Origin: Bugula neritina
Taxonomy: Eukaryota; Animalia; Bryozoa
Reading direction: 5' to 3'
Length of the DNA stretch: 64,000 nt
NCBI GenBank assembly: GCA_964035545.1
Contig: OZ037766.1
Location: 7,368,722 to 7,432,721, forward strand
In this document: piece by piece, positions 2,452 to 39,359 of the stretch
How positions within the stretch are numbered: the stretch's first letter is position 1
How the letters are laid out: the number at the start of each line of letters is the position of its first letter
Translations under genes and position numbers: made by a program
The notes under the pieces: model-generated
Database searches by the model: none
Seen by the model: only the letters and a program-made list of their open reading frames with translations
What the model was told of the DNA's origin: nothing

Positions 2452-2547
2452 ATACCAGAAATAAGCAAACCTGTTCTCAAAATGATTGATTATATGCATG
2501 CATGGTTCAACTTAACAGATTTAAACTTGTTAGAACTTTTTATGGCA

Positions 2548-7515: not shown

Positions 7516-7736
7516 TGAGTCAGTCAGCATGCATGTAATTGATTACCTTGAGTCAGCAGCGTTCACATCCTTAGTTACCAAAAAACTTTCCATTTTAAAA
7601 TTGACATTAAGGAAACTAAGTTTGCCAGGTGATTGGATAAACAATGGATAAACTGAAGCAAATCATATTCCTAACTGTAATATGTATCTATAATATAACT
7701 TTTTGGAAACCCATAAAAATTGTACCTATATAAAAG
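7516..7736 (+). promoter_or_regulatory. Putative promoter of paralog B: two AP-1 sites and a TATA box
   Basis: TGAGTCA at 7516-7522 and 7549-7555; TATATAAAAG at 7727-7736, about 70 bp upstream of the ATG at 7802. Confidence 0.55.
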
Positions 7737-7801
7737 AACCAGCAATTAGATGATTTACATTTGTATTTTACAACTGATAGAACTACAAGCCAGCAGCAAA
7801 C

Positions 7802-14829: not shown

Positions 14830-14990
14830 AATAAAGTTCAATGAACAACGTTGCAGGACTCAAATGTTTGCATTATAATGTTTACAATGTAGTGTAAATT
14901 ACGTACTACTATATACTCACTGTTGCCAATGCTAATGCCAATGCTACAGCTGCTTATACTGCTGCTACGTACTACTACAAACAACAACAA

Positions 14991-15641
14991 TCACCACCAC
15001 CACCACCACCACCACCACCACCACCACCACCACCACCACCACCACCACCACCACCAACACCACCACCACCACCACCACCAACACCACCACCACCACCACC
15101 ACCACCATCACCACCACCACCACCACCACCACCACCACCACCACCACCACCAACACCACCACCACCACCACCAACACCACCATCACCATCACCACCACCA
15201 CCACCACCAACACCACCACCAACACCACCATCATCATCACCACCACCACCACCACCACCACCAACACCACCATCACCACCACCAACACCACCACCACCAC
15301 CACCACCACCAACACCACCATCACCACCACCACCACCACCACCACCACCACCACCACCACCACCACCACCACCACCATCACCACCACCACCACCACCACC
15401 ACCACCACCAACACCACCACCACCACCACCACCAACACCACCACCACCACCACCAACACCACCATCACCATCACCACCACCACCACCACCACCACCAACA
15501 CCACCATCACCATCACCACCACCACCACCACCACCACCAACACCACCATCACCACCACCAACACCACCACCACCACCACCACCACCACCACCACCATCAC
15601 CACCACCACCACCACCACCATCATCATCATCACCATCATCA
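14991..15641. repeat. Long imperfect (CAC)n microsatellite with CAA/CAT interruptions
   Basis: About 650 bp; accounts for the poly-His, poly-Val and poly-Gly ORFs. Confidence 0.95.
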
Positions 15642-16377
15642 CTATTATGCAAGATCAGCAGCAATAACATGTAACATTCTAAATGCTCCTGAAGTTGCAT
15701 TTTATTACTACCCAGCAAAATCTTGTTGCAGTGATTTGCCTATCCGATTGAAGATAGCTATAAACCCTTTTTCCTGATGAGTTTTAATGCTCTATAACAC
15801 ATTAGAAAAAGTACAATATATATACTAGAAGAAATACGAAAGCATTTACAAGTTGTAGCTGTAAGTTTAGTCATAACACTATATATAAAACACAATCTGA
15901 ATTCCAGTCACATGCATGTAACAAAACATAAAAATTCAACTAAAGCAGGAAATCACTCTGCATAGACTAGATACAGGTTTACATTAGTCAAATATACTAT
16001 ATTTACTTCCTTATAATTAAGTTGTGAGATAGCACACATGTATTATTATAACAACGCAGCGTTACTTAAACTGCAGTGAACAAACTATTTTATAAAGATT
16101 TATTCTAAATCTTTAAAACAACTATAATGTTATACCTATTATAATTCCATAGAAACCGTAAAGTAAACATTAAGTGCGTCATTACAAACACTAATTATAA
16201 AATATGTATTATAGTAAGAAGAAATTAACTTGATAACCGTAAACAGCTCATAAGAAATCTATTATAAGCCACTGTATGATGTCATTCCTGTCTTTTAGTT
16301 TTATCAATCCAAGACAGCAGCACTACTTGCAGCAGTACACAGCATGTTTTAGGTAATATTATAATAGTTGAGCTGGG

Positions 16378-20165: not shown

Positions 20166-22755
20166 AAGCAGCTGTTATCTCATCAAACGCATGCTGACGA
20201 GATTAGTGTACAATTGTATAACTTAGACAAACCTTTTGGTCACTAATGTTTATACATACTATTTCTTAGCTAAGCACTACCAAGGCCCGGTGGAACTATT
20301 GTCATAATTTTATTTATCAATCATTTTTGCCATATCCGCTATTAATATTACTTATATTTATTTATTTTATACAAATATATACGATATTTTTACAAGGATG
20401 GTGTTACTGTGTGTATAGATATCTATTGTGGCTGCATGTATGATCAGTGAGTGAGAATTCACTGCATACTACCAGCAATCTCTATTTTATTTATCACGCT
20501 GATAAAGATTTACAACAATTTATATTATATCACATCATATTATATTATAGTATATTACATTATATTATATTATCTTACATTATTTTATATATGAAGTGTT
20601 TATACGGATTGCTTTCTTTATACACATGCTTGTGTACAAAGAAGCATGCATACTTAAACATTGTTTCTTTTGTTCAGGCAAATTTTTTTGCAAATAAATA
20701 ATTAAATGAGGGATTAAATTTGAGAAACTTTTTTCTGCAAATGCATCATTACACTGCGCAGCTGCAACTGATGAAATATTCAGGTATACGAGAAGCATTT
20801 TGTTTTTATTACTTAATTACTTTATTTACTTTATGCTATCCTGTAAAGATAAAATGTTCACTAATGTATATTCACGTTAGTAATATCATGCTGCCCATTA
20901 CTTGATGTGTGCATGCATGGAGGGTATAGCAGTAACATTATGAAGCTTTCTGATAAAAAAACAGACAAATTGAAACTACCTGCTGCTTGACTTTTGGAAA
21001 CCAACAGCTAGCAATGAATTCCATAAGTATTTTATTGCTGACTCAATAGATTGCATATAAAAGAGATGCATAATATATTGTTGTTATAATGATTTCATTA
21101 GAAGTTGGTTTTTTGAAAATTTAGGATTTCTCAGACCTAAGTTTGGATAAAGGATTATCCAATGAAATGATAACATTACTATACTATTCTAATAAGTAGG
21201 GAATTTGGTAAATTTCATTCTATAGCAAAACTGACTGCTGTGCAAATGAGTAATATCATGTAAAGAGCTAGCAATGTGGAGAAAACTCCTGCCTCTATAC
21301 TTCCTTGTTGCAATACATATCATAGTGAAGTAAGTGTTCCAGTGTTGTATTTGTATTATAGTAGCATTATGTCTTACTCAACTATCCAATAGACTGCCTA
21401 CTGGATGGAAAACAACAAAAATTTCTACTTGGCCCAGGGAAAGGCGATAGTCCAAAAGTAGACATGTATTCAGTGTATTATAACATGTATTCAGTGTATT
21501 ATAACAACAGTATTTGTTATCATCATGCTAACCAGTGTTGGTGTTTGTACTTAGGTGTGCCTAGATCTGAAATTTCTATTAGCAGTAATTAGTATGTGTC
21601 TTGAGTACCTTAATTGAATAAAAAGATTGTGATTTGCTAAAAAAATATATAAAATGGGTTAAAAAGAAATTGCAAAGCTTTTTGTCTCCATGTGTGGAGA
21701 GGATTTACGAACATCCACACAAGTTTCAATGTTGTTTTTATCAGACCATGTGCTTGGAAGTTTCCAAAATGTTTTTCAAATTATTCTTATAATAAGTGGG
21801 TGCTGACTTATTTTGTATTTTCCCCGTCATTTGCCTATATGTTTATGTTTGGAAAGATTGGTAATGCTGTCAGTCTAATAGTAAAGTGATACCATACTAT
21901 ATCCTATATACCTTGCTTTGGTTTTATAATCCACATGAAAGCTTTTAGGTACATTGCACCAAAATTTTATCAGAGTTTTAGCTTTTTATACTCTTTACTT
22001 ACCAAAAAGCAAATAAAACTGAATACAGTTATTAATGCAAGTATTCCTATTCTACATTAATAGAAAAAATAGTCAAATAAATGAAAAACTAAAAACATTT
22101 ATATTTGGGTTACTGGTAGGTGAATTGGAATCATTGCTTCCATTAAATCATCACATTTAAAAGCTCCTAGCCTTTGAAATGCCATTTTTGTAGACAGTAA
22201 TGCACTAAAAGCATTGACCAGTGCAGTTGTGACTTGTGACAGCAGTTAGCAAGATTGAATCAGCTTATATGCAAACTTCAAACTTTTTTTCTGATAGTGA
22301 TTAGACAAATATTAATAGAATAGCAGAAAATTATAAACACTGAACTTAAACTATTATAGTTCAATATTTATAATTATAAAAATGGTTTGTATTTGGAGTT
22401 GTACCCTCACCAAACAACAGGAATTTGTAGGCAAAGATCTCTAGAAAATTATTTTTTGATGATCAGAGGTTTTTAGGTTGATCACATATTTTGGAAAAGG
22501 GTTAAAGGTTAATGAATATATCGCGCTATATTTTGGTGCCTTGAAATTAAAAAGTCAATTTGATTTCAAAACCAAGTCCAAAGAGATGTAGGAATAAATT
22601 ACTTATACGATGTTTGGGTAGTTTTTGCCTACACCATTTTGACTTTGGTCGAATCATAATATCAAAATATTGCAAACGTTGTCCCAAAACCAAACTGTGA
22701 CAACTTACTTCTTACTTCTAGTTCTTAGTATCACTATTAGTATTAGTATTAGTAT

Positions 22756-23061
22756 TGTTATAATTTTCAGTTTTAGGGTTGATGTACTATCCAGAGAGTC
22801 TATTTGTCTATTATAGAACTGCACCAGGCTAAGTCGAGTGAACGAGTATATTTTATACACAACTATACATTATAAAAACACGATACATTATTTCAAACAA
22901 GTTACACATCTAATCTATTTCACACTCTAGCTTCGACTGAGTTAGCAGCGGGAAACTACAATTGCTGCTAACTATCAACTACGCTAATTGGCTATCCATT
23001 GTTCCGGGTCAATTACGCGACCCTACACGTTGTGCTGCTGGTAGTTCCACGAACCACCACA
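22756..23061 (-). repeat. 3' LTR (LTR-A)
   Basis: TGTTATAATT...CCACCACA; direct repeat of 31731-32036. Confidence 0.96.
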
Positions 23062-23095
23062 CCGCCCCCACCAGCAGAAACCTATCTTTCTGATA
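23062..23095 (-). other. Polypurine tract of the gag-pol unit with preceding hairpin
   Basis: Minus strand: TATCAGAAAGATAGGTTTCTGCT-GGTGGGGGCGG|TGTGG, abutting the 3' LTR. Confidence 0.85.
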
Positions 23096-23340
23096 TATAT
23101 ATAAAAAAACATTCAATAGTAATTGCAGACATCAGTGGACAAAAATAATACATAATATACAGGAAGAGACATAATAATAGACAGAGTCACGGTAACGATC
23201 CGTTGCATACAATTGGCCAGCTATAGATAGACGAGGAATACTAGCTAGCTGTGGTAGTAGACAAGGATTAACCTGTCTAGCAGTTAAGCATTTACACGAG
23301 TTTGGTTCCTCACCAAATGTGGAGTATTCTGGGTAGCATA

Positions 23341-24128
23341 CTAGAGTCCTTGTTGGGCACGCCGGTGCTTGGCTTGGCATGTACGCAGTTTCCGTTTCAT
23401 ACGGCATACGGATCCCTTGAGCTGGAAGAGTCCTGTTGTAGTGTTAAGTAGGTCTGGTGCCAGCTGGGTGAACTCTTCTTGTAATCGTAGGAGGCGTTCT
23501 TCTACTGTGGCTAGTCGTACCGGGTCGGGGGACGGTGTCCGTCTGCGGCGTAAGGGTGGACTGGGGGACCTGGTCCGTCTCTTCGCCGGGGTAGGGGAGA
23601 TCTCTCCTTCTTCTGGATATGTAGTTTCCTCGGGGGTGTATGTAATTTGAGGGCGGTCAGACACCAACGGGGATTGTTGGCGGGCGTTGTCTAACACACG
23701 TTGGAACCCCGAGGATAGAACGGCTAATAGCATGGCCTTCTTTACCAGAGGTCGTATATATGTGAGGAACTCCGGGTACAGCTTAGCGTCGACCACATAG
23801 TTTTCTCCAGGGAAACAGCCCGCCGCTCTGTGTTTGGTGACGGGGTAGGGATACACATCATTGTACCCGCAGGGGCAGAAGGTCAGTAGGAGGTGAGCAT
23901 TGACGTGTAGTTTAAGGGAGCGGTGAGAGGCGCAATCTTCACCACAGATCTGGCATCTCGTCCGTCCTCTGGACCCCCAGGCTGTTTCTATTTCTTCTTC
24001 GGTTTGTGGAGACACCCACCGCCAACGGCGGCGTAGTGGCTCAGGCCGGTCACCACTAGCCTGGTCCTCCGGATACGGAGCGGGAAGTGTTCTATCCCGT
24101 ACCCTGGTTGTAGCGGGTCGAGTGTAAT
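23341..24128 (-). CDS. Accessory ORF3 in the env position: C2H2 zinc finger, second C-x-C...H...C motif, R/S/P-rich basic tract and C-terminal coiled coil; probably a 3' exon of a spliced RNA
   Basis: CQICGEDCASHRSLKLHVNAH; CPCG...KHRAAGC; AKRRTRSPSPPLRRRRTPSP; LATVEERLLRLQEEFTQL. No upstream ATG, but a branch point CACTAAC (24154-24148) and acceptor CTTTTTCAG| at 24129/24128. Confidence 0.75.
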
Positions 24129-24441
24129 CTGAAAAAGTTTCAACAGTGTTAGTGCAGTACACTGCCGTGTTGTCAGCTTGAACAGCTTGGCAACTCCTAA
24201 TTCAGTTACCTCGTAGAGATTAATGATAGTGAATAGTCAGATAGAACCGTATTGCAATGAGATTATAAAAATCTCTAAGTCAAACTGAGTTCTTACTACG
24301 GTATTTCACTAACCTATCTCCAGCTCGATTGATTCAGTGAGTCAGAGCTGAGCGATGCAATCTAGTTTCGTATTAAGATATAGTTAACTCACCCCACGAT
24401 CTGTTGTCGTAAGACATACTGAATATGTGAAATGGTTTGAA

Positions 24442-27400
24442 CTACTGCTTAGAAACACGTCTACTCCTGACTGCATCAGCGTATGAAAAGATCGAGCAAC
24501 GTGGTTGGGGTGCGTGATTAAGACTTTGTGCCCCCGGCGGATGAATTTTATTTCTATTTCCGCCGATGTAAAAGTTGATATTTCCGTGGTGTTGACAACT
24601 CCCACATTTGCTCGATTCTTTTCTCGTACGGTTTTCCCCTAAACTTTCATGTGTGCCGCTTTTAACGCAGTCACATACGAAGTCCTTCAAGTATGCGGGG
24701 GGTTGCCTCGTACGCTGTCCCCTTTCTAGGGGGGGTGACACGCTTGCCGGTTCGTTAGTAGGGGCCTCTAATGGCGTCTCTACTTCACCGTCAGCAGTCA
24801 CCTCTTCTTGTTCTCCGGATGGAGCCCCTCCCTCCGTGGGGGTTTGCACTTCCGGAACCGGCTCGGTTTCTGGAAGTGATGGAATCAGACTTGGCGGTGG
24901 CGGACACGCTTCTGTTGGCAGAAGCTGCCGCTCCTCTCTCACCAAGTTTTCTTCCCGCGGTATGACCACTTCGTATTCAGGTCCATGCCGCCGTCGCCCG
25001 CGCGTTGTTGTCTGCCTTCTGGGCTCTAACAACGGGGGGGCTTCTCCCACTCCGCCGGGGCTAGCCCAATACGGTTTCAAGCGAGACTCATTCTGGATAG
25101 ACACCTGTCCTGAGCGCTCAATCTTGTACGTATGATTGGGCATAGCCTCGACGACCACGTAGGGGCCTACGAACTTAGGCTTCAGCTTATCAGCCTGTCC
25201 GCGGCGCCTACGGTAATTGACCATCCACACCTTATCTCCCCTTTGATAGAGAGGGGGTTCATCGGAATCTTCGTGCCGCACCTTCCACTGCTGTTGACGC
25301 AGTATATCGTGTGCGGCCTTCATCCGTTCCACTAGTTCACTGGCATACTCGTGAACCGAGTTATCTTGCTCTGGAACGTGATAGGCGAGATGGTCAGGGA
25401 CACGAGTCTCTCTCCCGAGCATCAAGAGGTTTGGGGTCTCACCAGTACTGGTGTGTGGGGTGCTACGGTATGCACGCATGACTTGTGGCAACACCGTATC
25501 CCATTCCTCTTGACCTCGTCCAAGGAGGAGACTCCGGAGCGCATCACCTAGCATCCGGTTGTTGCGCTCCACCACCCCATTACCTTGAGGGTGGTAGGGG
25601 GTGGTCCTGCTCTGATTTACTCCCCAGAGGTGGCAAAGGTCGCTCGTCAGTTGAGACTGGAATTGAGCGCCTTGATCAGAGTGTATCTGTTCGGGAAGCC
25701 CAAAATAACAGAATACATGTTGGTCTAGCGCCCTGGCCACTGTTGGGGCTGATGCATCTGGGATGGCCAGAGCATCCGCCCACCTAGTAAAGTGGTCGGT
25801 TAGTACTAGGATCCAATTATTGCCTCTGGGGGTCAGGGGCATGGGTCCGACCAGGTCTACAGCGACTACTTGCCAGGGCCTACCAGCATATAGCCTCCGC
25901 CGTCCTGCTTCACCAGGGGGGCGGCTATGCTTACTGGCCTGGCAGATCTCACACTGTTTGACTCTGAGCCGGACGTCACGCTCCATCTGCGGCCAATACC
26001 ACCGGAGTCGTAATTTGGACATCACTCGCTTGACCCCTGCGTGGGCCTGCTTGTGAGTATCCCAAATCAACTCACGGCGGATGGCTGTGGGGCAGACTAC
26101 CCTCTTCCTTTCCGGGTGTCTACCGCTGGCAGCTAGAGAGATGGTTAGCAACCCATCCTGCCCGATCCGCAGCAAGTCCCAACGCTGACAGTATAGCCTG
26201 AACTCGGCGCATCCCTGTCGTATGCGTTCCTCGCTGGGTCGTCGCCCTTCCCTTTTGGCCCGGTATATGTCTGCCACGACTCCAGGCAGCTCTTCTTGGA
26301 GCTTCTTCAGCTCTCGAACATTACCGGCCAGTACAGGGTTGGCGCGGAGGTTTTGTACATCCTCCGGGGATTCATCAACTCTCTGCCTGAGTTGACCTTG
26401 ATCCCAGCCAAACGGTGCTCCGCGATGAGCCAGCGTCTCCAACTCGCATCGTGGGGGACCTCCATCCCTCCTCTCGATGTTGAGACACTGCTTGCAACCT
26501 CCGTCAGGTCGGCGACTCAACCCATCCGCATTGCTGTGTCTCTTGCCCGGTCGATGTTCGATCCGGTACGAGAATTCAGCTAGGATTTCGAGCCACCGGG
26601 CGACCTGACTAGAGGGCTCTGCTCTCCTGCACAACCAGATCAGCGAGGCATGATCCGTACGCAGCCGGAACTTCCTGCCATATAGGTATGGTCTGAAGTG
26701 CTTCACTGACTTGATTACTGCCAGCAGTTCCTTGCGGGTAGTGCAGTAATTTCGTTCAGCGGGAGAGAGAGACTTGCTGTAGTAGGCTACTACTACTTCT
26801 CGGCCTTCCTGCACTTGTGACAGCACAGCGCCAACATTCTGGTCACTGGCGTCCGTGTCTAGGATGTACTCCAGAGTGGGGTCTGGGTAGGCCAAGATGG
26901 GCGCCGTTAGGAGGCAGCCCTTGAGGCGGTCGAACGCTTCTTGTTCGACTGGAGTCCACTGCCACGTCACTCCCTTTGCGGTAAGCCGGTTTAACGGCTG
27001 GGCTATGCCCGCAAAGTCTGGTATGTATTGCCTGTAATACCCTACCAGCCCCAAGAAAGCCCGGAGTCCGGTCAAGTCTTGGGGGGTGACCCAGTCTTCT
27101 ACTGCCCGTACCTTCTCGGGATCCGTTGCCACGCCGTTTCGACCGACAACGTGCCCCAGGTACTTGACCTCCGGCTGCAACAGAGCGCACTTGGAAGGTT
27201 TGAGCTTAAGACCGGCACCTCGGAGTCTCTCGAAAACCTCCTGCAGACGACTGACATGTGTCTCGAAGTCTGGAGAGATTACGATGACATCATCGAGGTA
27301 GACCAGCAGTGTCTTCCAATGGAGTCCGCTAAGGACTTGTTCCATCAGCCTCTGGAAGGTGGCTGGGGCGGAGGTTAACCCGAAGGGCAGCACCTTCCAC

Positions 27401-29010
27401 TTCCACAAACCGTCCCGTGTGATAAACGCCGCTTTCTCTTGGGCGTCGGGACTCAGAGGAACCTGCCAATAGCCGCTTAGCAAGTCTAACGTACTGAAGT
27501 ACTTGCTGCCGGCTAGAGCGTCCAATGACTCGTCAATACGAGGTAGAGGGTAGGCGTCCTGTATGGTTACGCTATTGAGTTTGCGGTAGTCCACACAGAA
27601 CCGCCAACTGCCGTCTTTCTTCCGGACCAGTACGACTGGCGAGCTCCACGCACTATGGGCGGGCTCTATCAGTCCCCGGTCCAGAAGATCCCGTACTTGT
27701 CGGCTAACCTCCTTCTCTTTCTCCGGCCCCAGCCTGCGTGTGGGCTGCCGGACAGGGACTGTCCCTGCAGTCAGCGGTATTTCGTGTCTGACAATTCCAG
27801 TCAGTCCCACGTCATGCTCCCCGCTGCTGAACACATCATCGTAGTCGCGTAGTAACTTGGCCATAGCTTGGCGTTCTCTGTTACTCGCGCAGCCGCCACT
27901 GGCTGTCTCGTATAACTCCCGGAGATGTGTTGGGACTGCCCCTCGTCCCTGAATAGGGTGTCGAGGGAGTGCCTCTGTCGCATCACCCAGCGACGGGCCT
28001 ACGTCTCCCTCTTGAACAGAGTGAAAACGGCCCAGCATCGACTCAGCCGGGAGCTTGATAGGCTCGGTAAAGGGGTTGACGCACTGCACTAAGATCTCCC
28101 CTTGCTCAGTCAGCTGATTCAGACTGCTGGCAAGTTGGATCTTTTCGTGCGCGCCTTCAACCACCCCGAGTCCAGAGATCCGGCTACTATTCACCCTGCA
28201 GTGAATGGTAGCCCGGGAGCGGCCTGGTATGGTACGGTTGCGTACCACTTGCACACCTCCCACTAAAGGGCAGCCGAACTTGTCGACGCAGGCGAGTTCC
28301 CGCCCGGACATCATCATTGCAGATCTGCTAAAATCTATGTGACATCCGTGCCGTTTAAGGAACGGCATCCCGAGGATAGCATCCTCCTTGAGCTGACTGA
28401 CGATAAACGTCTCTTGGATCGTTTGATCACGGACTTGTCCCGTCAGCTCAATTATACCATAGAAGGGAAGGCATGACCCGTCAGCTAGGGTGCCGTATTC
28501 CCCTTCGTATGCTTCCATCTCGCCCCTGACCCTAGCACTGAGGGTGTCGAAGAGTTGGCGGCTTAAGAGGTTTGTGGTACAGCCCGAATCAATGAGAAAA
28601 GTAACAGCTTTGCCTTCCAGTTTGCCGGGCAAGAAATAGCTGTTCCCATGGGGCTGCACCTGAACTCTCCCTTCAGGCCTTACTCTCGCAGGGAGTACCC
28701 CCCTCGCTTTGGGTCGCGAAGGAGGTCTCTTGGGGCGGTGATAGGCAGGCCTCGGGGGTGCCGAGGCTAGATTCTCAGCTACCTTTGTGTGCTCCCATCC
28801 AGATTCTTGGACTTGTAGCCCTGTGAATCTGTTGTGAAGGGGCATAGAAAAGGCAGCCGCGGGGCGAAGCCCCTTGCTGGTCCGTCGTGGCTGTTGCCAC
28901 TGTTGGTTGCCAGTACGCGGTACCCGTCTGGGTGACCTGCGTTTCTTCTTCCCTAGAGGTTTCGTCGGCCCGCGGAAGGTGGGAACATCTGCGGGCCGCG
29001 GTAGTTTAAC
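24442..29010 (-). CDS. pol: Pol polyprotein (protease, RT, RNase H, integrase), reached by -1 frameshift from gag
   Basis: FLIDSGCT protease; LPFGL and YLDD RT; DTDAS/ELLA/RTDH/ADGLSR RNase H; HHCC, VDLVG/HSDQG/VERNNR DDE and KFVGPY integrase motifs; no stops in ORF 24442..29070. Confidence 0.97.
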   Translation of the reverse strand, partial: VKLPRPADVPTFRGPTKPLGKKKRRSPRRVPRTGNQQWQQPRRTSKGLRPAAAFSMPLHNRFTGLQVQESGWEHTKVAENLASAPPRPAYHRPKRPPSRPKARGVLPARVRPEGRVQVQPHGNSYFLPGKLEGKAVTFLIDSGCTTNLLSRQLFDTLSARVRGEMEAYEGEYGTLADGSCLPFYGIIELTGQVRDQTIQETFIVSQLKEDAILGMPFLKRHGCHIDFSRSAMMMSGRELACVDKFGCPLVGGVQVVRNRTIPGRSRATIHCRVNSSRISGLGVVEGAHEKIQLASSLNQLTEQGEILVQCVNPFTEPIKLPAESMLGRFHSVQEGDVGPSLGDATEALPRHPIQGRGAVPTHLRELYETASGGCASNRERQAMAKLLRDYDDVFSSGEHDVGLTGIVRHEIPLTAGTVPVRQPTRRLGPEKEKEVSRQVRDLLDRGLIEPAHSAWSSPVVLVRKKDGSWRFCVDYRKLNSVTIQDAYPLPRIDESLDALAGSKYFSTLDLLSGYWQVPLSPDAQEKAAFITRDGLWKWKVLPFGLTSAPATFQRLMEQVLSGLHWKTLLVYLDDVIVISPDFETHVSRLQEVFERLRGAGLKLKPSKCALLQPEVKYLGHVVGRNGVATDPEKVRAVEDWVTPQDLTGLRAFLGLVGYYRQYIPDFAGIAQPLNRLTAKGVTWQWTPVEQEAFDRLKGCLLTAPILAYPDPTLEYILDTDASDQNVGAVLSQVQEGREVVVAYYSKSLSPAERNYCTTRKELLAVIKSVKHFRPYLYGRKFRLRTDHASLIWLCRRAEPSSQVARWLEILAEFSYRIEHRPGKRHSNADGLSRRPDGGCKQCLNIERRDGGPPRCELETLAHRGAPFGWDQGQLRQRVDESPEDVQNLRANPVLAGNVRELKKLQEELPGVVADIYRAKREGRRPSEERIRQGCAEFRLYCQRWDLLRIGQDGLLTISLAASGRHPERKRVVCPTAIRRELIWDTHKQAHAGVKRVMSKLRLRWYWPQMERDVRLRVKQCEICQASKHSRPPGEAGRRRLYAGRPWQVVAVDLVGPMPLTPRGNNWILVLTDHFTRWADALAIPDASAPTVARALDQHVFCYFGLPEQIHSDQGAQFQSQLTSDLCHLWGVNQSRTTPYHPQGNGVVERNNRMLGDALRSLLLGRGQEEWDTVLPQVMRAYRSTPHTSTGETPNLLMLGRETRVPDHLAYHVPEQDNSVHEYASELVERMKAAHDILRQQQWKVRHEDSDEPPLYQRGDKVWMVNYRRRRGQADKLKPKFVGPYVVVEAMPNHTYKIERSGQVSIQNESRLKPYWASPGGVGEAPPLLEPRRQTTTRGRRRHGPEYEVVIPREENLVREERQLLPTEACPPPPSLIPSLPETEPVPEVQTPTEGGAPSGEQEEVTADGEVETPLEAPTNEPASVSPPLERGQRTRQPPAYLKDFVCDCVKSGTHESLGENRTRKESSKCGSCQHHGNINFYIGGNRNKIHPPGAQSLNHAPQPRCSIFSYADAVRSRRVSKQ
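28949..29010 (-). other. Candidate -1 ribosomal frameshift signal (slippery heptamer plus pseudoknot)
   Basis: G TTA AAC in the gag frame (29010-29004), 5-nt spacer, 8-bp stem CGGCCCGC/GCGGGCCG, and loop TTCCC complementary to downstream GGGAA. Confidence 0.7.
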
Positions 29011-29840
29011 CCCTGATTTAGGAAGGGACAATATCGGCGGAAGTGTCCTTGATTTCCGCACTCCCAGCAAAAACTGACTGTTTCTCCCTGTGGCGGCGCC
29101 GATGGCCGCATGGGCTCAGGGGCGGTACTCACTGGGTTTTGTGGTGTCAGTGTTGCTATCAGCTTGGCTAGCATGTCCGTCAGTTGAGTGACTTTTGATG
29201 CCGTCGCCAACTGGGACACGGCAGCCGCGGCGGGGGTTTCCTCCCCTTGTCCCGCGGCCGTGTCTGCGCGGTCTATCTCCACTTGGCGGGAGCTTCCGCG
29301 ACTTTTATGCATTTGGTTAGCTAGGAGGTAAGCTTCCCCCTCAGTCAGAGCATCTTCAACGGTGGTGACTCCCCTAGCTAGAAACTGGTGGTGGAGACCC
29401 AGATCGTCGACAGATGCTATGAAAGCGTCGAGGGTGTACCTCTCACGGTTGACTGGGGGCAAGTCGCTGTACGCGATCTGTGCCAGCTTCATGACCGCGG
29501 CGGCATGCTCCCGCAGCGGGGTGCGGGGATCACGCCGCAACCTCTGTAATCGGGCCCTGGCATCTGTAGCCAAGAGGCCAAAGCGGGCCCGCAGAGAAGC
29601 AAAGATATTATCAATGTCTACGCCCAGCCCATAGGGCTTGGCTTTGTCCATCAATGCCATTCTAAGCTTCAGCAGGGCCACCCTAGGGGGCCACTGAGCG
29701 ACGTCCATTACGTCGCTAAACTCTTGGATGAATTGTTCCACCTCCTCTTCACCCGTGAAGGTGGGCGCCTTTAACCTGTAGTGGTATTCAGCTAGTTCTC
29801 GTGGAACCCTTCGCTCTTCTACTACATGGTTAACAGGCAT
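28953..29840 (-). CDS. gag: Gag (295 aa) with CCHC zinc knuckle
   Basis: PTFTGEEEVEQFIQEF capsid-like start; CWECGNQGHFRRYC knuckle; ATG 7 nt after the second PBS; overlaps pol in the -1 frame. Confidence 0.93.
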   Translation of the reverse strand: MPVNHVVEERRVPRELAEYHYRLKAPTFTGEEEVEQFIQEFSDVMDVAQWPPRVALLKLRMALMDKAKPYGLGVDIDNIFASLRARFGLLATDARARLQRLRRDPRTPLREHAAAVMKLAQIAYSDLPPVNRERYTLDAFIASVDDLGLHHQFLARGVTTVEDALTEGEAYLLANQMHKSRGSSRQVEIDRADTAAGQGEETPAAAAVSQLATASKVTQLTDMLAKLIATLTPQNPVSTAPEPMRPSAPPQGETVSFCWECGNQGHFRRYCPFLNQGLNYRGPQMFPPSAGRRNL

Positions 29841-29847
29841 TGTCTCT

Positions 29848-29865
29848 ATCCCACTGCTGCCACCA
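29848..29865 (-). other. Primer-binding site 2 (tRNA-Leu type), directly upstream of gag
   Basis: TGGTGGCAGCAGTGGGAT, 1 nt from the CA end of LTR-B; complementary to a tRNA-Leu(AAG/TAG)-like 3' end ATCCCACYGCTGCCA-CCA; identical to PBS1. Confidence 0.9.
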
Positions 29866-29866
29866 C

Positions 29867-30793
29867 TGTAGTAATTCGTGGAATTACTAGTTTGTGGGTT
29901 TTTATTGTGTATTACTAATTACTGCATCATGCTGTGAGGTTACAGAAGGAACCGAACAAATGGATTAGGAATGCGAGAATTATATTTAAGTAAACAACAT
30001 ACGAGTAAAAATAACATACATCAGCCGAGAAAGAATATACAAAAGTCGTAGTACTACATGAGTTAGCCTGCCAGTTCCAATCTGCCTGTGGGCGGCTGAA
30101 GGTGCTGTATATATACGAGAGCTCGCCTCTGATTGGTTGGTATTAATATCACGTCATCCTGGCCATTACTTCAAGGTTCATCCGGGCAAGCTGATGCATA
30201 GCTGTCACTTTGTTGATGATGGAAAATACCCACACTTGCTCAGACGACTGTAAGCATGATTCATCGCAGCCACAGCTGGCTGGATCGTGATTGGTCCATG
30301 GGTTCCGGTGGACCGCGGGAAGTCCCCGCATTTCACATGTGCCGTACGGCACGAAGGAATGTTAACATGTAGTCAACTGATGTATTGATGAGTGAGTCCA
30401 GCTAAGTGAATGGCCATAGCGTCGCTGGTGCGGAACAGCATACGGTCTCTCTAGTAATGGTGATGCCGTCAAGCTAGGCATTAACTACTAGTACTGGCAG
30501 CCTGTTATGATGACCATGCGTACGCATTACGTTACATTTATTACACTGCAGTCCATGGTTATAGCTGCCGGCGGTGTTCCATTGCCGATGGCGTGACATT
30601 AGTAAACTACTTACGTGACATTAGTAAACTACCTACGTGACATTAGTAAACTACCTACGTGACATTAGTAACTACCTACGTGACTACTAACCGCTAACTA
30701 CTAACCATAGCGGGTTAATTACATCACACATTGACGATGTGTGATTATACTACGACAGGTGAATAATAATATAGATAACCAAAACTCACTACA
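29867..30793 (-). repeat. Internal LTR-like unit (LTR-B, 927 bp), distinct from the terminal LTRs
   Basis: TGTAGT...ACTACA inverted termini with a PPT at its 5' edge and a PBS at its 3' edge. On the minus strand, in order: tandem repeats, CRE-like TGACGTGA (30156-30149), CCAAT (about 30135), TATATATA (about 30115-30108), AATAAA (about 29906-29901). Single copy in the window, so LTR status is inferred from flanking signals. Confidence 0.8.
30592..30684. repeat. About 4.3 copies of a 22-bp tandem repeat CGTGACATTAGTAAACTACCTA in the U3-like part of LTR-B
   Basis: Directly visible; adjacent units, no spacers. Confidence 0.92.
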
Positions 30794-30828
30794 CTCCCCC
30801 CACCATCGGAAAGTACACCTTTCCGATA
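30794..30828 (-). other. Internal polypurine tract (end of cargo unit) with preceding perfect hairpin
   Basis: Minus strand: TATCGGAAAG-GTGTA-CTTTCCGAT-GGTGGGGGGAG|TGTAGT; similar to the terminal PPT cassette. Confidence 0.83.
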
Positions 30829-31078
30829 AGAAAGGAGTACAAGAAAACAAACAGACAAAAAAAAGAAAACACAATTAGAATACAATATAAGAACGCCACC
30901 AAAAAAAAAATATTCACACAGAAACTGCAACAATATAACAGACATTCGGTATACACTACTTACAAATAAGGGAAACTACAGGAGCACAGTCTACAAGTAC
31001 AATAAGCTGGCTAATACCTTAGGATCAGACTTCTGTGTTAGGTTACGAAGGTGTCACTGCTGATATGGCTGGTCGGGT

Positions 31079-31309
31079 TTACCGGGGTCGGGGATATTCT
31101 CTGCCTTGGACATTACTACAAGCAGAGGCTGAGGCCGTGAGATTTTCCTCGGGCTCCTCTGAGCTTGAACACCTATCAAGGAGGGGGTTGACATGAAGGG
31201 CGTGTCCATCATCAGAGCGAAAGTCGGCAAGTCGTTGCCCTGCTCTGGCTATATGCGCCTGTCTTTCCAGCTGCTCCTTAGTGCCACAAAGAGGACGGGT
31301 ACTCTCCAT
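31079..31309 (-). CDS. Cargo-unit ORF B (76 aa from ATG), unknown function
   Basis: MESTRPLCGTKEQLERQAHIARAGQRLADF...; GC-rich; no recognised domain; may be part of a longer disrupted or spliced ORF. Confidence 0.3.
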   Translation of the reverse strand: MESTRPLCGTKEQLERQAHIARAGQRLADFRSDDGHALHVNPLLDRCSSSEEPEENLTASASACSNVQGREYPRPR

Positions 31310-31401
31310 CACGACGCCGTCTGCCGTTCAGTAGTACGCCGAGGTTCTTGAGACGTTTGCCGCCACTTCCAGCGTAAGCTCGACACCTGCTCGTACAACT
31401 C

Positions 31402-31677
31402 TTACTGAAGTGCTTCCCTACAGCGTAGCGTAGCCAGGGAATATGTATAGACAGTGCTCCCCCACGCCACCCGTACTTCCTTCACCAAAGGTCTGCTGAA
31501 TGAGCGGTGTGAATTGTCTACTTGTGCATTGCATTCGCACTGGCAAGACGCCAGACCCTCCCGGTCTTGGGCACTACACGCGTTAGAGAAATACCTGTTA
31601 AAAGGTCGCTGGTGCATTCGATATCTAATGTCATTGTAACAGTCCTGCCTGTAATCTCCTATCCTTGGAAACGGCAT
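31402..31677 (-). CDS. Cargo-unit ORF A (91 aa from first in-frame ATG), Cys/His-containing, unknown function
   Basis: MPFPRIGDYRQDCY...ACSAQ...SCQCECNAQVDNSH...; starts about 35 nt after PBS1, where gag would normally be; no recognised domain. Confidence 0.4.
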   Translation of the reverse strand: MPFPRIGDYRQDCYNDIRYRMHQRPFNRYFSNACSAQDREGLASCQCECNAQVDNSHRSFSRPLVKEVRVAWGSTVYTYSLATLRCREALQ

Positions 31678-31711
31678 CGGTTCTTCATATCCCACAGCAT
31701 TGTACACAAAT

Positions 31712-31729
31712 ATCCCACTGCTGCCACCA
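31712..31729 (-). other. Primer-binding site 1 (tRNA-Leu type)
   Basis: TGGTGGCAGCAGTGGGAT, 1 nt inside the 5' LTR. Confidence 0.92.
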
Positions 31730-31730
31730 C

Positions 31731-32036
31731 TGTAGTAATTTTCAGTTTTAGGGTTGATGTACTATCCAGAGAGTCTATTTGTCTATTATAGAACTGCACC
31801 AGGCTAAGTCGAGTGAACGAGTATATTTTATACACAACTATACATTATAAAAACACGATACATTATTTCAAACAAGTTACACATCTAATCTATTTCACAC
31901 TCAAGCTTCGACTGAGTTAGCAGCGGGAAACTACAATTGCTGCTAACTATCAACTACGCTAATTGGCTATCCATTGTTCCGGGTCAATTACGCGACCCTA
32001 CACGTTGTGCTGCTGGTAGTTCCACGAACCACCACA
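31731..32036 (-). repeat. 5' LTR (LTR-A)
   Basis: TGTAGTAATT...CCACCACA; three mismatches to 22756-23061. Confidence 0.96.
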
Positions 32037-32600
32037 GTATTACTATTACTATTAGTATTAGTATTACTATTAGTATTACTATTAGTATTAGTATAAGTAT
32101 TACTATTAGTATTAGTATTACTATTAGTATTACAGTATGAGTATTAGATTAGTATTACTATTAGTATTAGTGTTACTATTAGTATTACTACAGTACAAGT
32201 TGAAGTTAAGTACAAGTACTAGTACTACTACTACTAGTAGTAGTAGTAGTAGTAGTAGTACAAACTGAAACTACGTCTACTCATGCTAAGTGTAGCTAGT
32301 ACTACGTCTACTCTACTAGAAGTATTAGTAGTACTAGTACTAGTAGTATTACTATTAGTATTAGTAGTACTACTACAACTGTACAAGCTTTTTTGTTTCA
32401 ACCTGACCCTACTATTAGATTAATACTAATACTAATAGTAGTACTAATACTAATAGTAATAGTAATACTAATAATAGTGTAAGTATTAATAAATTTAATG
32501 CTATCAGTATCAGTATGAGTATCAGTATAACTATTACTACCATTACTAATATTTACTAATAATATTAGTATTAGATTAGTATTACAATTTAAATTGGCAA
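32037..32600. repeat. Degenerate (TATTAG/TATTAC/TAG)n simple-repeat field; target of the Gypsy insertion (continues at about 22730-22755)
   Basis: Hexamer and trimer repeats on both sides of the element. Confidence 0.88.
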
Positions 32601-33807: not shown

Positions 33808-36800
33808 ATGCTTCGTACCAGCTTGGCCAAAATGAAGTTGGCAGCTACATCTGCTAGTATGAACCAGTTCATGGTAAGTACGATGTTTTAGCTTGTACAC
33901 ATTACCTTGTTGCTTTACCTAATATAAAATCAAGTTGCTTAATTTTGTGCATAATATAATGACGTAACTAATGTAGTATTTTATGTGATAATTGTTTCAT
34001 TTTTGATACGTATTACAAATTTTAGTTGAATTTCAATGTTATTTTTATATAATGATTTGAATTTATAATAACATGCTAGTGGATAGGTAATTTCTTAAAT
34101 TAATGTATCAAATGAATTGCATAGACTGCTATGCAAATGGGTTAGATAGAATAAGTATGTAACTAATTTTTCGAGATTTATTTAAACCCAACGACTTTGT
34201 GGTGTCCAAATTAATAGGTTGCTAAAAGTTGACTAATTTTTAGTAGCTTCTAATTCAGATTGTTGGACGTATATAAACGTATGTGTTTAGATAGTTGAAG
34301 CTGTAATTTACTAATTATGCTTTGCTGATTTTACAACCTGTTTTTAGCTTGTTGGCTAGGTTTTAAAAGTGTGCAAAGAATGGCACTTTAATACCTTAAA
34401 GTTAGATTGAGTTGTCAAAAAAGTAGTTAATACTGAAAGTTGATTGAAAACTAAGAATGGTAATTTGTAGTATGTACTAAATATCACTCAAAACCGTTAA
34501 CTATTGCAAAGGTGTTAAAATATTATATTGTATTAAATATGGTGTAATATGCAGTCATTACATTTATATTCCAATTATAATACAAGACATTATGCTAAGC
34601 CATTGTTGATACCCAGTTCGAAGTTACTCACCCGTTTCTTGTAAAGAACACAGTCTATGTTACTTTAGAGGTTCCAGTCTCCAGTTCTGACGATACAAGC
34701 GAATAGGTGTGCCAGCAGTGAGGCTCTCAAAACTTCACTCTATGATTACCATGTCGAAAAGGGTAAGCACAATGTCATAGTGTTTAACATTACTTTTATG
34801 GTGTACAAGTTTGTCAATTGGTGTGATCAGGAAATTATCACAAGTTAATATAGTTATCCGTATAAGTAGCAACCGTGGTCTAGGGGTTAGAGCGTTGGTT
34901 TAGTAAGCACGAAGTCATGGGTTCAAGCCCCGACATAGGCCATTGGTGATGCTAAGAAGTGTATCCAGTCATAACTGCTCCTGTGCCTCGTCTGAATTAG
35001 TCCTTAGCCCAATTTTACAAAAAAATCTTCTATCAGGGATTTTCTCACAGGGATATGACTATAATTTTGCTTGAGTTGTTTCAATGTAGTCGTCTAGTTT
35101 GAATTTTTAGGTGGGAAGATGGTGGATTTTGCTGGTTGGCTAATGCCGGTGGTGTACTCCAGTGATACCATTATTCAGTCTCATCTTCACACCAGACAAA
35201 GTTGCAGTATATTTGACGTTTCCCACATGTTGCAGACTAAAGTACACGGGAAGCACTCTGTGGACTATTTAGAGTCTTTAGTTGTAGGAGATATAAAAGG
35301 TGGGCTGCACATTCTAATTCTATCATTTCTCTTATTTGGTATTTCTAGCTACAAATTATGTATCAACAACAACAGCAGAGATTGACACTGTAACAATTAC
35401 TTGCAAGTTGTGTGTGGGTGCAGATGATAAAGTGACCTTGACCTTGAGGCTCATCTTGACCTTGAGCCTCACTTTGAATATAGTGTATAGTTCATATGAG
35501 TTGCAGGTCTGGCAGATGACACAGGGACTCTTACTGTCTTCACTAATCAGCAAGGCGGCATTTGTGATGACCTCATAGCTAACAAGACGTCTGACGGGTA
35601 CATCTATGTCGTGTCTAATGCCGGCTGCCGAGATGGTGATCTCGCACTGATGAAGGTAGTAACACTCCCACAGTTTTAATATATATGTACAACATACGGG
35701 TTGCTGTGTACAGCTGACTGCTGTGTATAGCTCCACGTGACATTATAAATATATATTGGTGTTTTTAAGTCACTGACTGCCTTACTCTGAACATTGAAGT
35801 GTTCTAACACTTTTATAATTTATATTGAAACTGGATCTCAGTTAGACAGCTCAATGATTACATTTATATTCTTATCTGTTAATGCAGTGACTGAAAAAGT
35901 TGTGCTTTTCAAACATTTGAATTAAGTTCTCTTGGGTAAGGCAACTCCTACTCACGTAATGCAGCTCGGATTTGCCAAACCCAACTTTTTCTTGCTTTAA
36001 AAATATTTTTTGAGGGAGAATATTAAATTCGCAAACCTAATATCAATGGTGGACATTGTTTTATAGCTGCTTGGAAATGCTGTTGAATTTTAATTAATAT
36101 TATGGCTGTTAACAGTCTCTGTTAATAATTATCTTCAACTGTATTTGTATAATTATATGATATACTATAACGGTTTGTTGTGTGAATATGGAGACTTGCT
36201 GTGTTTATTTTTACACTCCGTATTTCTTATTACCCTGAAACTTGAAATCATAATGAATACAGGTTAAAAATATATTGCAGAGCTGGGCCGGCCCAAGTCA
36301 TTCACTCGACATACTTGAAAATTCTTTACTCGAGTCAACTTGCTAAAACTATTTACTTGACTGCAAGTCTATGAAATTTAAGAAAATGTAGCACACAAAA
36401 CTATTTTTGGTGACTCAGAGCTAGTATGTCTACTAGCCCTGAAATACCAGTAGGTCATATCAGCACAGCTTTAACTCTAGGAGGTAATCTGAACATGCCA
36501 CTTGATTTGTTTGTTCTTCTAACTTTGTAGCGGAAATTAGAAGAGTGCAAGTCTAAAGGATTGGATGTGGAACTGGAAGTGTTAACTAATCCACTTGTCG
36601 CAGTGCAAGGACCTCTCATGTCTAAGGTGAGTAGAGAGTAATCGACACAAGTAAAACTTGCTGTAGAAATCAGAATATCTTCAATGGGCAGATTTTTTTC
36701 TGATCTTTATCACTTTGTTGGCCTGATCTCTTTGGTAACTTTAAATAGAAATTAATTTAAGAGTAGAATATAAGTTGTGTAGTCTATACAAGTAATGATT

Positions 36801-39359
36801 TTTAATTTCGGAGTTGTGAATATACGCTTCTAAAGTTGCATCTTATTGCTAAATGGCAGCTGTTACATGATACACAGCGAAATCATGTTGCAGTGATTTG
36901 CTTATCCAATCAGAAATAGCTAAATTATTTTCCCCTGATGAGTTGTAATGCTTTATAACACAATAAAGAAAGGGCAAAGTTACAAGAAAAATTATAAAAC
37001 CATCTACAAACTGTAGCCATAAGTTTGACAACATTACAATGACCATTCGCTACAGGTGCTGCAAGCTGGTGTAGATGTAGATCTTACTCAACTGTATTTT
37101 ATGAACACCACTATGGCGAGTGTCTTCGGAGTGGAGGGTTGCCGGATTACCAGGTGTGGATACACAGGAGAGGATGGTGTTGAGGTATGACAACTCCTAA
37201 AACTAACCAGTATCCGTAAAGCAGGTTTATAGCGAGTAGTTGTGAGCTGGTATACAGTACACTGTAGCTGGTATTGTAATGGCCATATCTAAATGTTTGT
37301 ATAGCACGTATATAATTGTGACCACATTTCATGAGAAGAAATGTTGTATTTTAAATATTGTAAGCTATAATTTCATATATGTTTAATAAACTATATACAC
37401 TTTTATTGTTAACCGTCAAATCAGTTCTTACTCACCCGTTTATTGACTGATGCTCTTAATTTTAAAATTAACTGCATTTGGTGTTTTGATTGTCAGAATT
37501 TAAATTGGCTGGAAATGAAATACAAATACATATGCACAGTTTCAGCTTGTTTTCTAATAAAATCAGGAGTAAATAATTCAACTCTTTATATTGCTATCAT
37601 TTTTAGAAGCACAATTTTAGCAGTAATAACTGTCTTTATAAACCAGCTAAGAGATTCCAGATGGTCGATATCACTGCTTCTTTATGTTGTATTTCCAGTG
37701 ATGTACACGTAGATCACTGGAAATGTTAACAGGTAGGTTATAACATGATGATGTAATTGGATCAATTTAAACTGAAATCTCCATTCTAGATTTCCATACC
37801 TGAAGGCAAAGAGCACCATATAATGGACTGTTTACTCTCCTCCAAGGAAGCTGGTGTGAAGTTGGCTGGGTTGGGGGCGAGGGACAGTCTAAGGCTTGAA
37901 GCTGGTTTGTGTCTCTATGGAAACGACATTGACGAAACTACAACCCCTGTTGAAGCTGCACTCACTTGGCTCATAGGTTTGTTACTCACGTCTTGGTTTA
38001 TTGATCTGTTACTAAGCTTCCTTCCGTGTTATCTGGTTTCCTGACATTACTTTGTAAGTATTAAACTTAGTTTTTGCCTACTTTCTTGCAGGAGTTGGCT
38101 CCTCGTCTTCCTATTCTCATTCTCTATTCTCTCAAAGCATTAGTTTTCCCATTAAATCATTGACTGCTGAGAAACTCTTGATTCGACAAATATATTTATG
38201 TTTATTTTGTTTGAACAGCTAGGAATATAAAGGATAAATGAAATGGTTGAGGCTCACATTTTAGTTTGCTATACGGGTGACACTTCAACCCTCCCTACTC
38301 AGGGATTACTATGACTCTCTGGTTAATTTTTTATGTCTGGCAGTAATAGTTAAAACCTGCCATAAGTTGTGAATGGTGGCCTATTTCAATGTGAGTATAA
38401 GCACTAAGACTAATACAATAACATGCTGTTGTACGTAGAGTGCAACTTCTGTGTGGTGTATATTGCTAGGTAAACGCAGAAGGCAAGATAGCAATTTTCC
38501 AGGATCTGACGTTATACTACAGCAGCTGAAGGAGAAACCTGCAAGAAAGAGAGTTGGTATTATAACTGAGTCTGGCCCACCACCACGTGGTACGTGCTGT
38601 AAACTGCCCACAAAACTAACTGGAAAAAATACCAGGAGTTTATGTTTACTATTCATGCTTCAATTAGGAGCATGCAACTCCGATTTTGTGGTTATTTTCT
38701 ACATTTTTGATGTGGCGGTGGCTCAAATATGTAATATGCATCAACTTTGCCTAACACTGATTGGTTTCCTATTCCTACAGCATTAAATGTACTGAAAATA
38801 GCCTAAGCAGTGCCACAGCACTTTGATATATGCATGCACTTACCAAGTTGTGGTAGTCCATAGGTTATCAATTAGCTCTCTTAGATAGCCCGACACAAAG
38901 CTGTGTAGTTGGGCATTTAAATGGTTCAACCTTGACTTTAAGCAAAATATTTTCTGAATTGGTGTGATATATTATTTTATATCCTATTGTATTGAGCGCT
39001 GTATTTTCATAAATATTGAGAAGACAATTCTATGCATAATGGTGTTTGTAAAAACTGCCTGCATTTAGTAAAGGAAATATCACTACTTGGTATTACCTAA
39101 TCATGTTGAAAGATTTGATAGCAAATTTATTGAATATGCTTTAGCTGGGTCGAAGGTCATAGTTGATGAGAAGGAAGTGGGCAAGATTACCAGCGGCGTA
39201 CCTTCCCCCTCCCTTAAAAAGAACATAGCTATGGCGTACATCCAAACTCATTGCTCTAAGCTAGGAACTGAGGTTATGGTAGAGACCAGAAATAAACTAA
39301 GCAAAGGAGTCATCAGCAGAATGCCATTTGTACCCAGTAACTACTACCTCAAGAAATAG
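33808..39359 (+). CDS. AMT: Aminomethyltransferase, mitochondrial (glycine cleavage system T protein), 414 aa; exons 33808-33873, 34669-34762, 35111-35299, 35507-35655, 36531-36626, 37056-37184, 37790-37976, 38470-38589, 39145-39359
   Basis: Transit-peptide-like N-terminus; [98 protein letters not shown]. All introns GT-AG with consistent phases (1245 nt total). Probable non-coding first exon ends at 33590. Confidence 0.97.
34866..35076 (+). mobile_element. tRNA-Thr-derived SINE, copy 3 (in AMT intron)
   Basis: A box TGGTCTAGGGG, TTAGTAA loop, B box GGTTCAAGCC, same body as copies 1 and 2. Confidence 0.85.

Follow-up and report, generated by a model that had tools for sequence, protein, structure and literature searches.

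The 64,000-nucleotide (64-kb) stretch of Bugula neritina DNA analysed here (contig OZ037766.1, positions 7,368,722 to 7,432,721; hereafter the window, with positions counted from its first letter) is about 30% G+C except for a block of 55% G+C at 22.7-32.0 kb. In this block lies a retrotransposon insertion (22756-32036, minus strand) that carries three long terminal repeats (LTRs) instead of two, in the order LTR-A, primer-binding site (PBS), region u, polypurine tract (PPT), LTR-B, PBS, gag-pol-ORF3, PPT and LTR-A. The domain order of pol, with Pfam matches to RVT_1, RT_RNaseH(_2), Integrase_H2C2 and rve in succession and an aspartyl protease upstream, together with the TG...CA LTRs, the PBS, the PPT and a short target-site duplication (TSD), identifies the element as a Ty3/gypsy (Metaviridae) LTR retrotransposon. 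A split or inverted-repeat element of the DIRS/Ngaro type was considered and ruled out: a DDE integrase with its zinc-binding domain was found, and a match to a recombinase was not. The features of the insertion, in the order in which they are read on the minus strand, are as follows.

32037-32040, minus strand: TSD copy, ATAC on the minus strand, upstream of the 5' LTR-A
31731-32036, minus strand: 5' LTR-A, 306 bp, TG...CA; its final 6 nt, ACTACA, are a tip of the LTR-B type
32013-32036, minus strand: U3-tip hairpin motif of the 5' LTR-A, with a 9-bp stem, a GTG loop and one G.U pair
31711-31740, minus strand: exact 30-nt repeat, copy 1, which takes in the final 10 nt of the LTR, one spacer nucleotide and PBS1
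31729-31712, minus strand: PBS1, TGGTGGCAGCAGTGGGAT, 18 nt
30828-31710, minus strand: region u, the non-coding internal region, probably of a second (B-type) element
30794-30827, minus strand: 9-bp hairpin (30827-30805) followed by PPT-B (30804-30794); free energy -14.1 kcal/mol, p = 0.002
29867-30793, minus strand: LTR-B, the internal LTR, 927 bp, single-copy in the window; CCAAT and TATA near 30135-30108, AATAAA at 29906-29901, and about four 22-nt tandem repeats in its U3 part (30592-30684)
29867-29890, plus strand: the motif of the initial annotation, at the U5 tip of LTR-B in the inward direction; 29869-29877 pair with 29881-29889 in a perfect 9-bp stem
29847-29876, minus strand: exact 30-nt repeat, copy 2, with PBS2 at 29865-29848
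28953-29840, minus strand: gag open reading frame (ORF), 295 aa, its ATG 7 nt past PBS2
24442-29070, minus strand: pol ORF, 1542 aa, with protease, reverse transcriptase (RT), RNase H and DDE integrase
23341-24162, minus strand: ORF3, a separate ORF past the pol stop
23062-23092, minus strand: hairpin (23092-23075) followed by PPT-A (23074-23062)
22756-23061, minus strand: 3' LTR-A; its U3 tip forms a hairpin (23061-23038), and its U5 tip is the native ...ATAACA
22752-22755, minus strand: TSD copy, ATAC on the minus strand, downstream of the 3' LTR-A

Our reading of this locus, to which we would give a probability of about 0.5, is that it represents one young three-LTR Ty3/gypsy insertion in which two elements are fused, and that the 24-nt motif present at the U5 tip of LTR-B and at the U3 tip of LTR-A is a palindromic LTR-tip module of common origin. 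The outer copies of LTR-A are 99.7% identical over 301 nt (one difference), with a further 2-nt difference at the U5 tip. They are flanked on both sides by ATAC, and when the flanks are joined minus one ATAC an uninterrupted (TAATAS)n hexamer array is restored in phase. LTR-B, lying between u and gag-pol, begins and ends exactly at a PPT/U3 and a U5/PBS junction. Both PPT/U3 junctions of the insertion are preceded by a hairpin that occurs throughout the family and both U5/PBS junctions carry the PBS of the family, and the presence of the hairpin at both PPTs tells us that the two types of LTR are bounded by genuine family-type signals. An internal LTR between two internal regions, a TSD around the whole and highly similar outer LTRs are the features by which Sabot and Schulman (2007, BMC Genomics 8:247; PMC1950507) separate template-switching complexes, in which the outer LTRs are near-identical, from post-integration recombinants, and the structure in the window falls among the former.

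The question of which LTR belongs to the gag-pol lineage could be addressed through its relatives. Searches with pol returned metagenome proteins only (best match, 72% identity), and our family comparison covers the contigs of ten pol relatives and two loci from a metagenome scan (L006 and L008). Throughout the family the PBS, TGGTGGCAGC(G/A)GTGGGAT, is conserved one base after ...ACA, and the PPTs are G-rich and followed by TGT...; the LTRs of different members are otherwise not alignable. Relatives of gag are closer, with many JGI metagenome matches at 60-88% identity, the nearest of them in samples 3300003318 and 3300002729. One locus, recovered in two samples (L106 and L107), is 74-78% identical to the window at the nucleotide level across gag-pol and 95.6% identical from the hairpin before PPT-A through the PPT to nt 10 of U3. 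This locus, which represents the A-type parent lineage, has the canonical A...A layout; its two LTRs, about 371-396 bp long, start TGTGGTGGTT and end ...AAATTATAACA, and no counterpart of u or LTR-B was found in it. From the absence of B and u in this plain two-LTR relative it follows that LTR-A is the native LTR of the gag-pol lineage and that u and LTR-B are foreign to it. The initial annotation had supposed that the element exists in two permuted forms; L106 does not support this idea, and A and B appear instead to be the LTRs of two elements joined once.

LTR-B and u derive from a second, probably non-autonomous element. Region u (917 nt when counted with its terminal hairpin and PPT-B) contains no ORF of note, no protein-level similarity to gag, pol, env or the relatives, and no Rfam match. 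Neither u nor LTR-A, LTR-B or the 3' untranslated region showed similarity to any of about 107 fetched loci by blastn and tblastx, and LTR-B is single-copy in everything searched. The U5 tips are also informative: ...ATAACA ends the 3' LTR-A of the window (22756-22761) and both LTRs of L106 (4910-4915 and 11918-11923), and ...ACTACA occurs only in the 5' LTR-A (31731-31736) and in LTR-B. The PBS may correspond to the 3' end of a eukaryotic tRNA-Leu; tRNA genes were found neither in the window nor in the fetched loci.

How might two elements come to be joined in this manner? We propose that A and B were joined before integration, either by RT switching between co-packaged RNAs or by recombination between forms of complementary DNA (cDNA), and that the join took place in the 20-30 nt of U5 tip and PBS common to both elements. 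Minus-strand synthesis on an A-type RNA would arrive at the PBS and pass, via the shared PBS, onto a co-packaged B-type RNA (R-U5-PBS-u-PPT-U3-R). On this second template the usual R-mediated jump would follow, and synthesis would stop at the second PBS, the landing site of A-type plus-strand strong-stop DNA. Recombination of cDNA forms over the same 20-30 nt of homology would yield an identical product. The second element uses the tRNA primer site of A, has a PPT of the same kind with a hairpin before it, and ends in an integrase tip like that of A. The join would also have overwritten the tip of the 5' LTR-A with that of LTR-B, and this detail may date the event. Both U5 regions of a daughter element stem from the 5' U5 of its parent, and a composite that had been copied again is expected to carry ...ACTACA in both copies of LTR-A. 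This is not so, and the fusion and the overwriting would therefore belong to the reverse transcription of this very copy, or else the tip was changed by later short-patch conversion.

We now turn to the motif by which the locus came to attention. The 24-mers at 29867-29890 (plus strand) and at 32036-32013 and 23061-23038 (minus strand) read exactly as the initial annotation had it: the B tip and the A tip are identical at 19 of 24 positions, each folds through nine base pairs around a GTG loop, and none of the five differences disrupts the pairing. A scan with a degenerate pattern, allowing up to three mismatches, returned only these three sites in 64 kb, with none expected from shuffled sequences, and the motif is accordingly not a common genomic repeat. 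The B-U5 tip folds as RNA at -7.9 kcal/mol (z = -2.85). For the two A-U3 tips the values are -14.5 kcal/mol (z = -3.4) and -14.4 kcal/mol (z = -2.5), and the remaining two LTR tips fold as RNA no better than their shuffles. Folds of the motif with DNA parameters are stable as well (about -5 kcal/mol). The differences between A and B stand at motif positions 4, 7, 8, 18 and 22 and are all transitions; from B to A, pairs 4-22 and 8-18 change from A-T to G-C and pair 7-19 from A-T to G.T. That the other two ends share a weaker motif, as had also been remarked, is true of the window, but the TGTAGT tip of the 5' LTR-A is secondary, given that the 3' LTR-A and L106 end ...ATAACA.

All four tips share TGTrrTrr, an integrase-recognition tip common to all ends that accounts for the motif's first 10-15 nt; the remainder is, as we picture it, an inverted copy of the LTR's own tip. 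If each hairpin arose on a similar tip, its 5' arm already dictates its 3' arm, and descent can then be judged freely only from the GTG loop, the pair that closes it and the flank. Once the 10-nt tip is set aside, 12 of the 14 remaining positions are still identical between A-U3 and B-U5 in reverse complement (p about 2.5e-5, rising to about 1.5e-4 when six end pairings are allowed for), and the best reading of these figures is that the A and B 24-mers are homologous, one module of common origin; when position is ignored, the 24-mer alone gives p of about 0.18. Local alignment of the whole LTRs in either orientation, judged against dinucleotide shuffles, gave nothing robust between A and B. 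The idea that LTR-A is an inverted B-like LTR was dropped, the short reverse-orientation match CAGGCTAA lying within chance.

A second hairpin emerged from the comparison of relatives. In every family member a hairpin lies 0-4 nt before the PPT; its stem sequences differ from one member to another and do so in mutually compensating fashion. Over 12 junctions (window 23092-23062 and 30827-30794 on the minus strand; L001, L006, L082-L086, L102, L104 and L105) the combined Fisher p is 1.3e-5, and this pre-PPT hairpin is better supported as a conserved structure than the tip hairpin first reported.

The position of the tip hairpin may nevertheless give a clue as to its role. The stem in LTR-B begins 11 nt after AATAAA and ends 3 nt before the PBS, and that in LTR-A and L106 begins 2-3 nt past the PPT/U3 junction; the same framing of the PPT by two hairpins recurs in L001 and L082 with unrelated sequences. 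LTR-B thus has an inverted repeat in U5 adjoining the PBS, at the position of the retroviral U5 inverted repeat (U5-IR), and LTR-A does not; the stem of LTR-A and the hairpin upstream of it would rather frame the PPT. Read inward, the motif would be in each case the first DNA extended from an RNA primer (the tRNA for B, the PPT for A) as well as the substrate end for integrase, and because both are the first DNA made from an RNA primer the U3 tip and the U5 tip can be regarded as equivalent places. From these positions one may suggest that the motif works as an RNA-level stem adjoining the primer site, kept through G.U intermediates. The G.T pairs in A and L106 would favour a stem in RNA, or in a tolerant single strand, over strict symmetry of DNA half-sites. 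A bolder extension, which we advance as speculation and consider quite improbable, is that the palindromic tip of 24 nt serves as a portable primer-junction module. It would be synthesised first from whichever RNA primer is in use, its fold would fix the LTR end for RNase H and integrase, and different lineages would have placed it at one tip or the other; together with the PBS and the pre-PPT hairpin, it would have let the non-autonomous B be copied, and even fused, with the autonomous A. The initial annotation had further pointed out that the two motifs form an inverted repeat around gag-pol. A B-U5 by A-U3 duplex is indeed predicted at -27.1 kcal/mol, against -7.0 and -11.1 kcal/mol for the two hairpins, but if A and B come from different elements this long-range repeat would be a by-product of the fusion and not an evolved one.

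Is the pairing maintained by selection, as was originally claimed? It survives all the differences between A and B; if five changes fell at random, a stem preserved to this degree would be expected with probability 0.04 when they are limited to transitions and 0.007 when any substitution is allowed. L106 has a U3-tip hairpin in the same register, with G.U at 4-22, 7-19 and 8-18, between the A-U of B and the G-C of A; its closing pair is U-A in place of C-G (a double change), its loop is ACA and the outermost pair is lost. Pairing holds in 26 of the 27 pair cells of the three sequences, three pairs have changed on both sides, and the 96% of paired cells compares with at most 67% when the partners are slid. 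We also scored tips across the family by energy, holding the tip fixed and shuffling the adjacent 21 nt (an earlier statistic based on runs of G.U was uninformative), which gave p = 0.043 for A-U3 and p = 0.001 for B-U5 of the window. The evidence that selection keeps the hairpin is, in our view, suggestive rather than strong. Among the relatives, p falls below 0.05 at three tips (L001-U3, L082-U3 and L085-U5), and a U5-tip stem is found only in L082 and L085 and is not conserved in the family. The tip hairpin is therefore lineage-specific and sporadic, not a hallmark of the family, and at present it is only a candidate cis-element; no match to Rfam was found.

Several observations weigh against the reading we prefer, beginning with the hairpin. 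All the differences are transitions, which often preserve wobble pairing by themselves, and five random transitions keep all pairs with P = 0.16. The homologous motif sequences number only three, and their covariation is not significant, its score being matched in 76 of 500 shuffles; the stem of L106 (-3.1 kcal/mol), while being the minimum-energy fold, is marginal and no better than shuffles. The alignment of LTR ends across relatives, which had been proposed as a check, yielded the L106 hairpin, but the other 33 tips showed no enrichment: the Fisher p was 0.40 for 22 tips of the ten relatives and 0.77 for another eleven distinct U5 tips that adjoin the same PBS. L102 even has the tip TGTGGTGGTT without the 3' arm. 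As for the fusion, an independent B-u-B element was not found, B and u having no match in the data searched; the TSD sits in a hexamer repeat, so that a 4-bp match is weaker evidence than usual; and the arrival of the B tip in the 5' LTR-A requires an extra heteroduplex or patch step in a switching route that we infer.

The three LTRs could also have arisen in other ways. That A and B are the two LTRs of one element which replicates in two circularly permuted forms, selection ensuring that integrase meets a hairpin at one end and a plain sequence at the other, would agree with a circular map on which each has a PPT upstream and a PBS downstream, with the preserved pairing of the hairpin, and with the element-LTR-element loops or tandems seen on the contigs of several relatives. 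We nonetheless find it very improbable, as L106 is canonical without B or u, LTR-B is single-copy in everything searched, and the B tip in the 5' but not the 3' LTR-A gives the locus the look of a primary product, where a re-copied composite would match at both. Formation after integration, through nested insertion or through unequal recombination between neighbours, is the usual origin of three-LTR complexes (PMC1950507), and a 4-bp TSD within a repeat may match by chance. In the present case there would be little to commend it: LTR-B is edged by an exact PPT with its upstream hairpin and by a PBS, not by a TSD, which makes a nested insertion unlikely; the two outer LTRs hardly differ, and joining the flanks restores an in-phase empty site; and recombination between A and B would have no homology to act on.

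The motif itself admits two other accounts, both of which we regard as unlikely without dismissing them. It might act only as double-stranded DNA, as an extended site for integrase or a host factor whose half-sites are read by a dimer, the symmetric substitutions then reflecting half-site symmetry. All four tips carry TGTrrTrr, in keeping with published integrase-recognition motifs that include the TGTGGYG of the CsRN1 clade (PMC3601003), the inward motif faces integrase in the same orientation at both ends, and a perfect palindrome is expected of a dimer site as much as of a hairpin; yet L106 and LTR-A tolerate G.T, which keeps an RNA stem while breaking the symmetry of half-sites, and the opposite tip of each LTR, which must bind to the same integrase, has no second half-site. 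The palindrome might equally have no function, having been produced at an LTR tip by a snap-back or quasi-palindrome templated event and then kept by intrastrand templated correction, or being simply young. Such an origin would suit the B stem, which repeats its own tip in inverted form at 9/9 positions, as well as the want of tip-hairpin enrichment in the wider family, the restriction of differences to transitions and the marginal stem of L106, which is what decay would give. It fits less well with the loop, closing pair and flanks that A and B have in common (12/14), which argue for one origin that has persisted as the LTRs elsewhere became too different to align, and with the register of L106, kept after five adjacent changes that include the double change of the closing pair.

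Should the fusion of two elements, with a tip module of common origin, prove correct, the locus would be a rare product of reverse transcription across two different retrotransposon RNAs caught in the act, and the presence of the partner's tip in the 5' LTR but not in the 3' LTR would date the fusion to the reverse transcription of this copy or to later repair. It would provide direct sequence evidence for the co-packaging of an autonomous and a parasitic family and for the shared primer site as the point of switching, and would indicate which short cis-signals a parasite must share with its host element.

Other observations were made on the relatives and on the element. ORF3 is homologous to a C-terminal extension that is fused to pol in relatives; in the window (24162-24442) this extension is read as a separate ORF, and the copy may not encode a full-length polyprotein. 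At 4917-4952 of L106, CAGCAGTGG is expanded into a short tandem array that replaces the 3' part of the PBS. The closest pol relative, L001, bears short tandem repeats in U3 and has in common with LTR-B a 12-nt motif, TGGCAGGCTAAC, downstream of the TATA box. An element-LTR-element layout was seen on the contigs L084, L086, L102 and L103 and in L085 (174-362 against 8915-9103), either as perfect loops (99-100% identity) or with halves 94-96% identical; these may be real tandems or assembly loops through the LTR. L104 contains past pol (7561-9603) a 680-aa ORF with a weak match to a Monjiviricetes fusion-glycoprotein family, which may be env-like. L087-L099, contigs of metagenome-assembled genomes (MAGs) assigned to Ekhidna, Rubritalea and Leptonemataceae, carry Ty3/gypsy elements with the same PBS, several with integrase upstream of RT, and they look like eukaryotic host DNA binned into bacterial genomes. 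Searches of viral contigs with the motif, with PPT plus tip, with tip plus PBS and with gag returned no match. The metagenome scan with a pol profile of generic RT patterns retrieved mostly distant elements, and a scan of genome contigs for U5 plus PBS found elements in bacterial MAG bins, mostly with integrase before RT and too distant to help.

Outside the insertion, the window holds at 14860-15780 a triplet-repeat block of about 900 bp with a strong skew of C over G, encoding long runs of His, Pro or Thr according to frame. At 35098-35382, 37790-38041 and 39072-39356 (plus strand) lie exons of an aminomethyltransferase (glycine cleavage T protein) with long introns between them; one exon, searched singly, had human AMT as its best match among solved structures. 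A reverse-transcriptase fragment resembling that of a long interspersed nuclear element occurs at 2490-3212 (plus strand), its relatives being all metagenome proteins.

Finally, the locus can be compared with systems already described. Its tips are those of animal Ty3/gypsy elements: LTR-A, L106 and L102 start TGTGGTG and all tips are TGT...ACA, and the 5' integrase-recognition motif given for the CsRN1 clade is TGTGGYG (Table 3 of PMC3601003), a likeness that concerns the tip motif of a published table and not phylogeny. With the template-switching complexes of grasses (PMC1950507) the insertion shares three LTRs, two internal regions, a TSD and near-identical outer LTRs, which there point to one event of reverse transcription and integration from two packaged RNAs. 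Unlike in those complexes, the internal LTR here comes from a different family and aligns with the outer ones only at the tips and PBS, the second of the internal regions does not code for protein, and the host is an AT-rich eukaryote and not a grass. The surroundings of the PPT recall the PPT-associated stem-loops of Sire and HIV (PMC3601003), in that pairing of the 5' end of U3, of pre-PPT sequence or of both frames the plus-strand primer. In Sire, as described there, the start of U3 pairs with the sequence before the PPT and leaves the PPT in the loop, whereas we find two separate local hairpins, one before the PPT and family-wide, the other formed wholly by the U3 tip and confined to the A type, L001 and L082. 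The closest parallel to the LTR-B stem is the U5-IR of retroviruses, a stem that overlaps the integration signal and supports the initiation of reverse transcription (PMC3601003), a similar structure being needed by Tf1 (Lin and Levin 1998, as cited in PMC4600332). As in the avian retroviral U5-IR and its Tf1 counterpart, the inverted repeat in U5 of LTR-B has its 3' arm a few nt before the PBS and overlaps the integrase-recognition tip. It differs from them in being a stem known from sequence, present in LTR-B, L082 and L085 but neither in LTR-A nor in most of the family, and in that the same sequence module stands here at a U3 tip as well.

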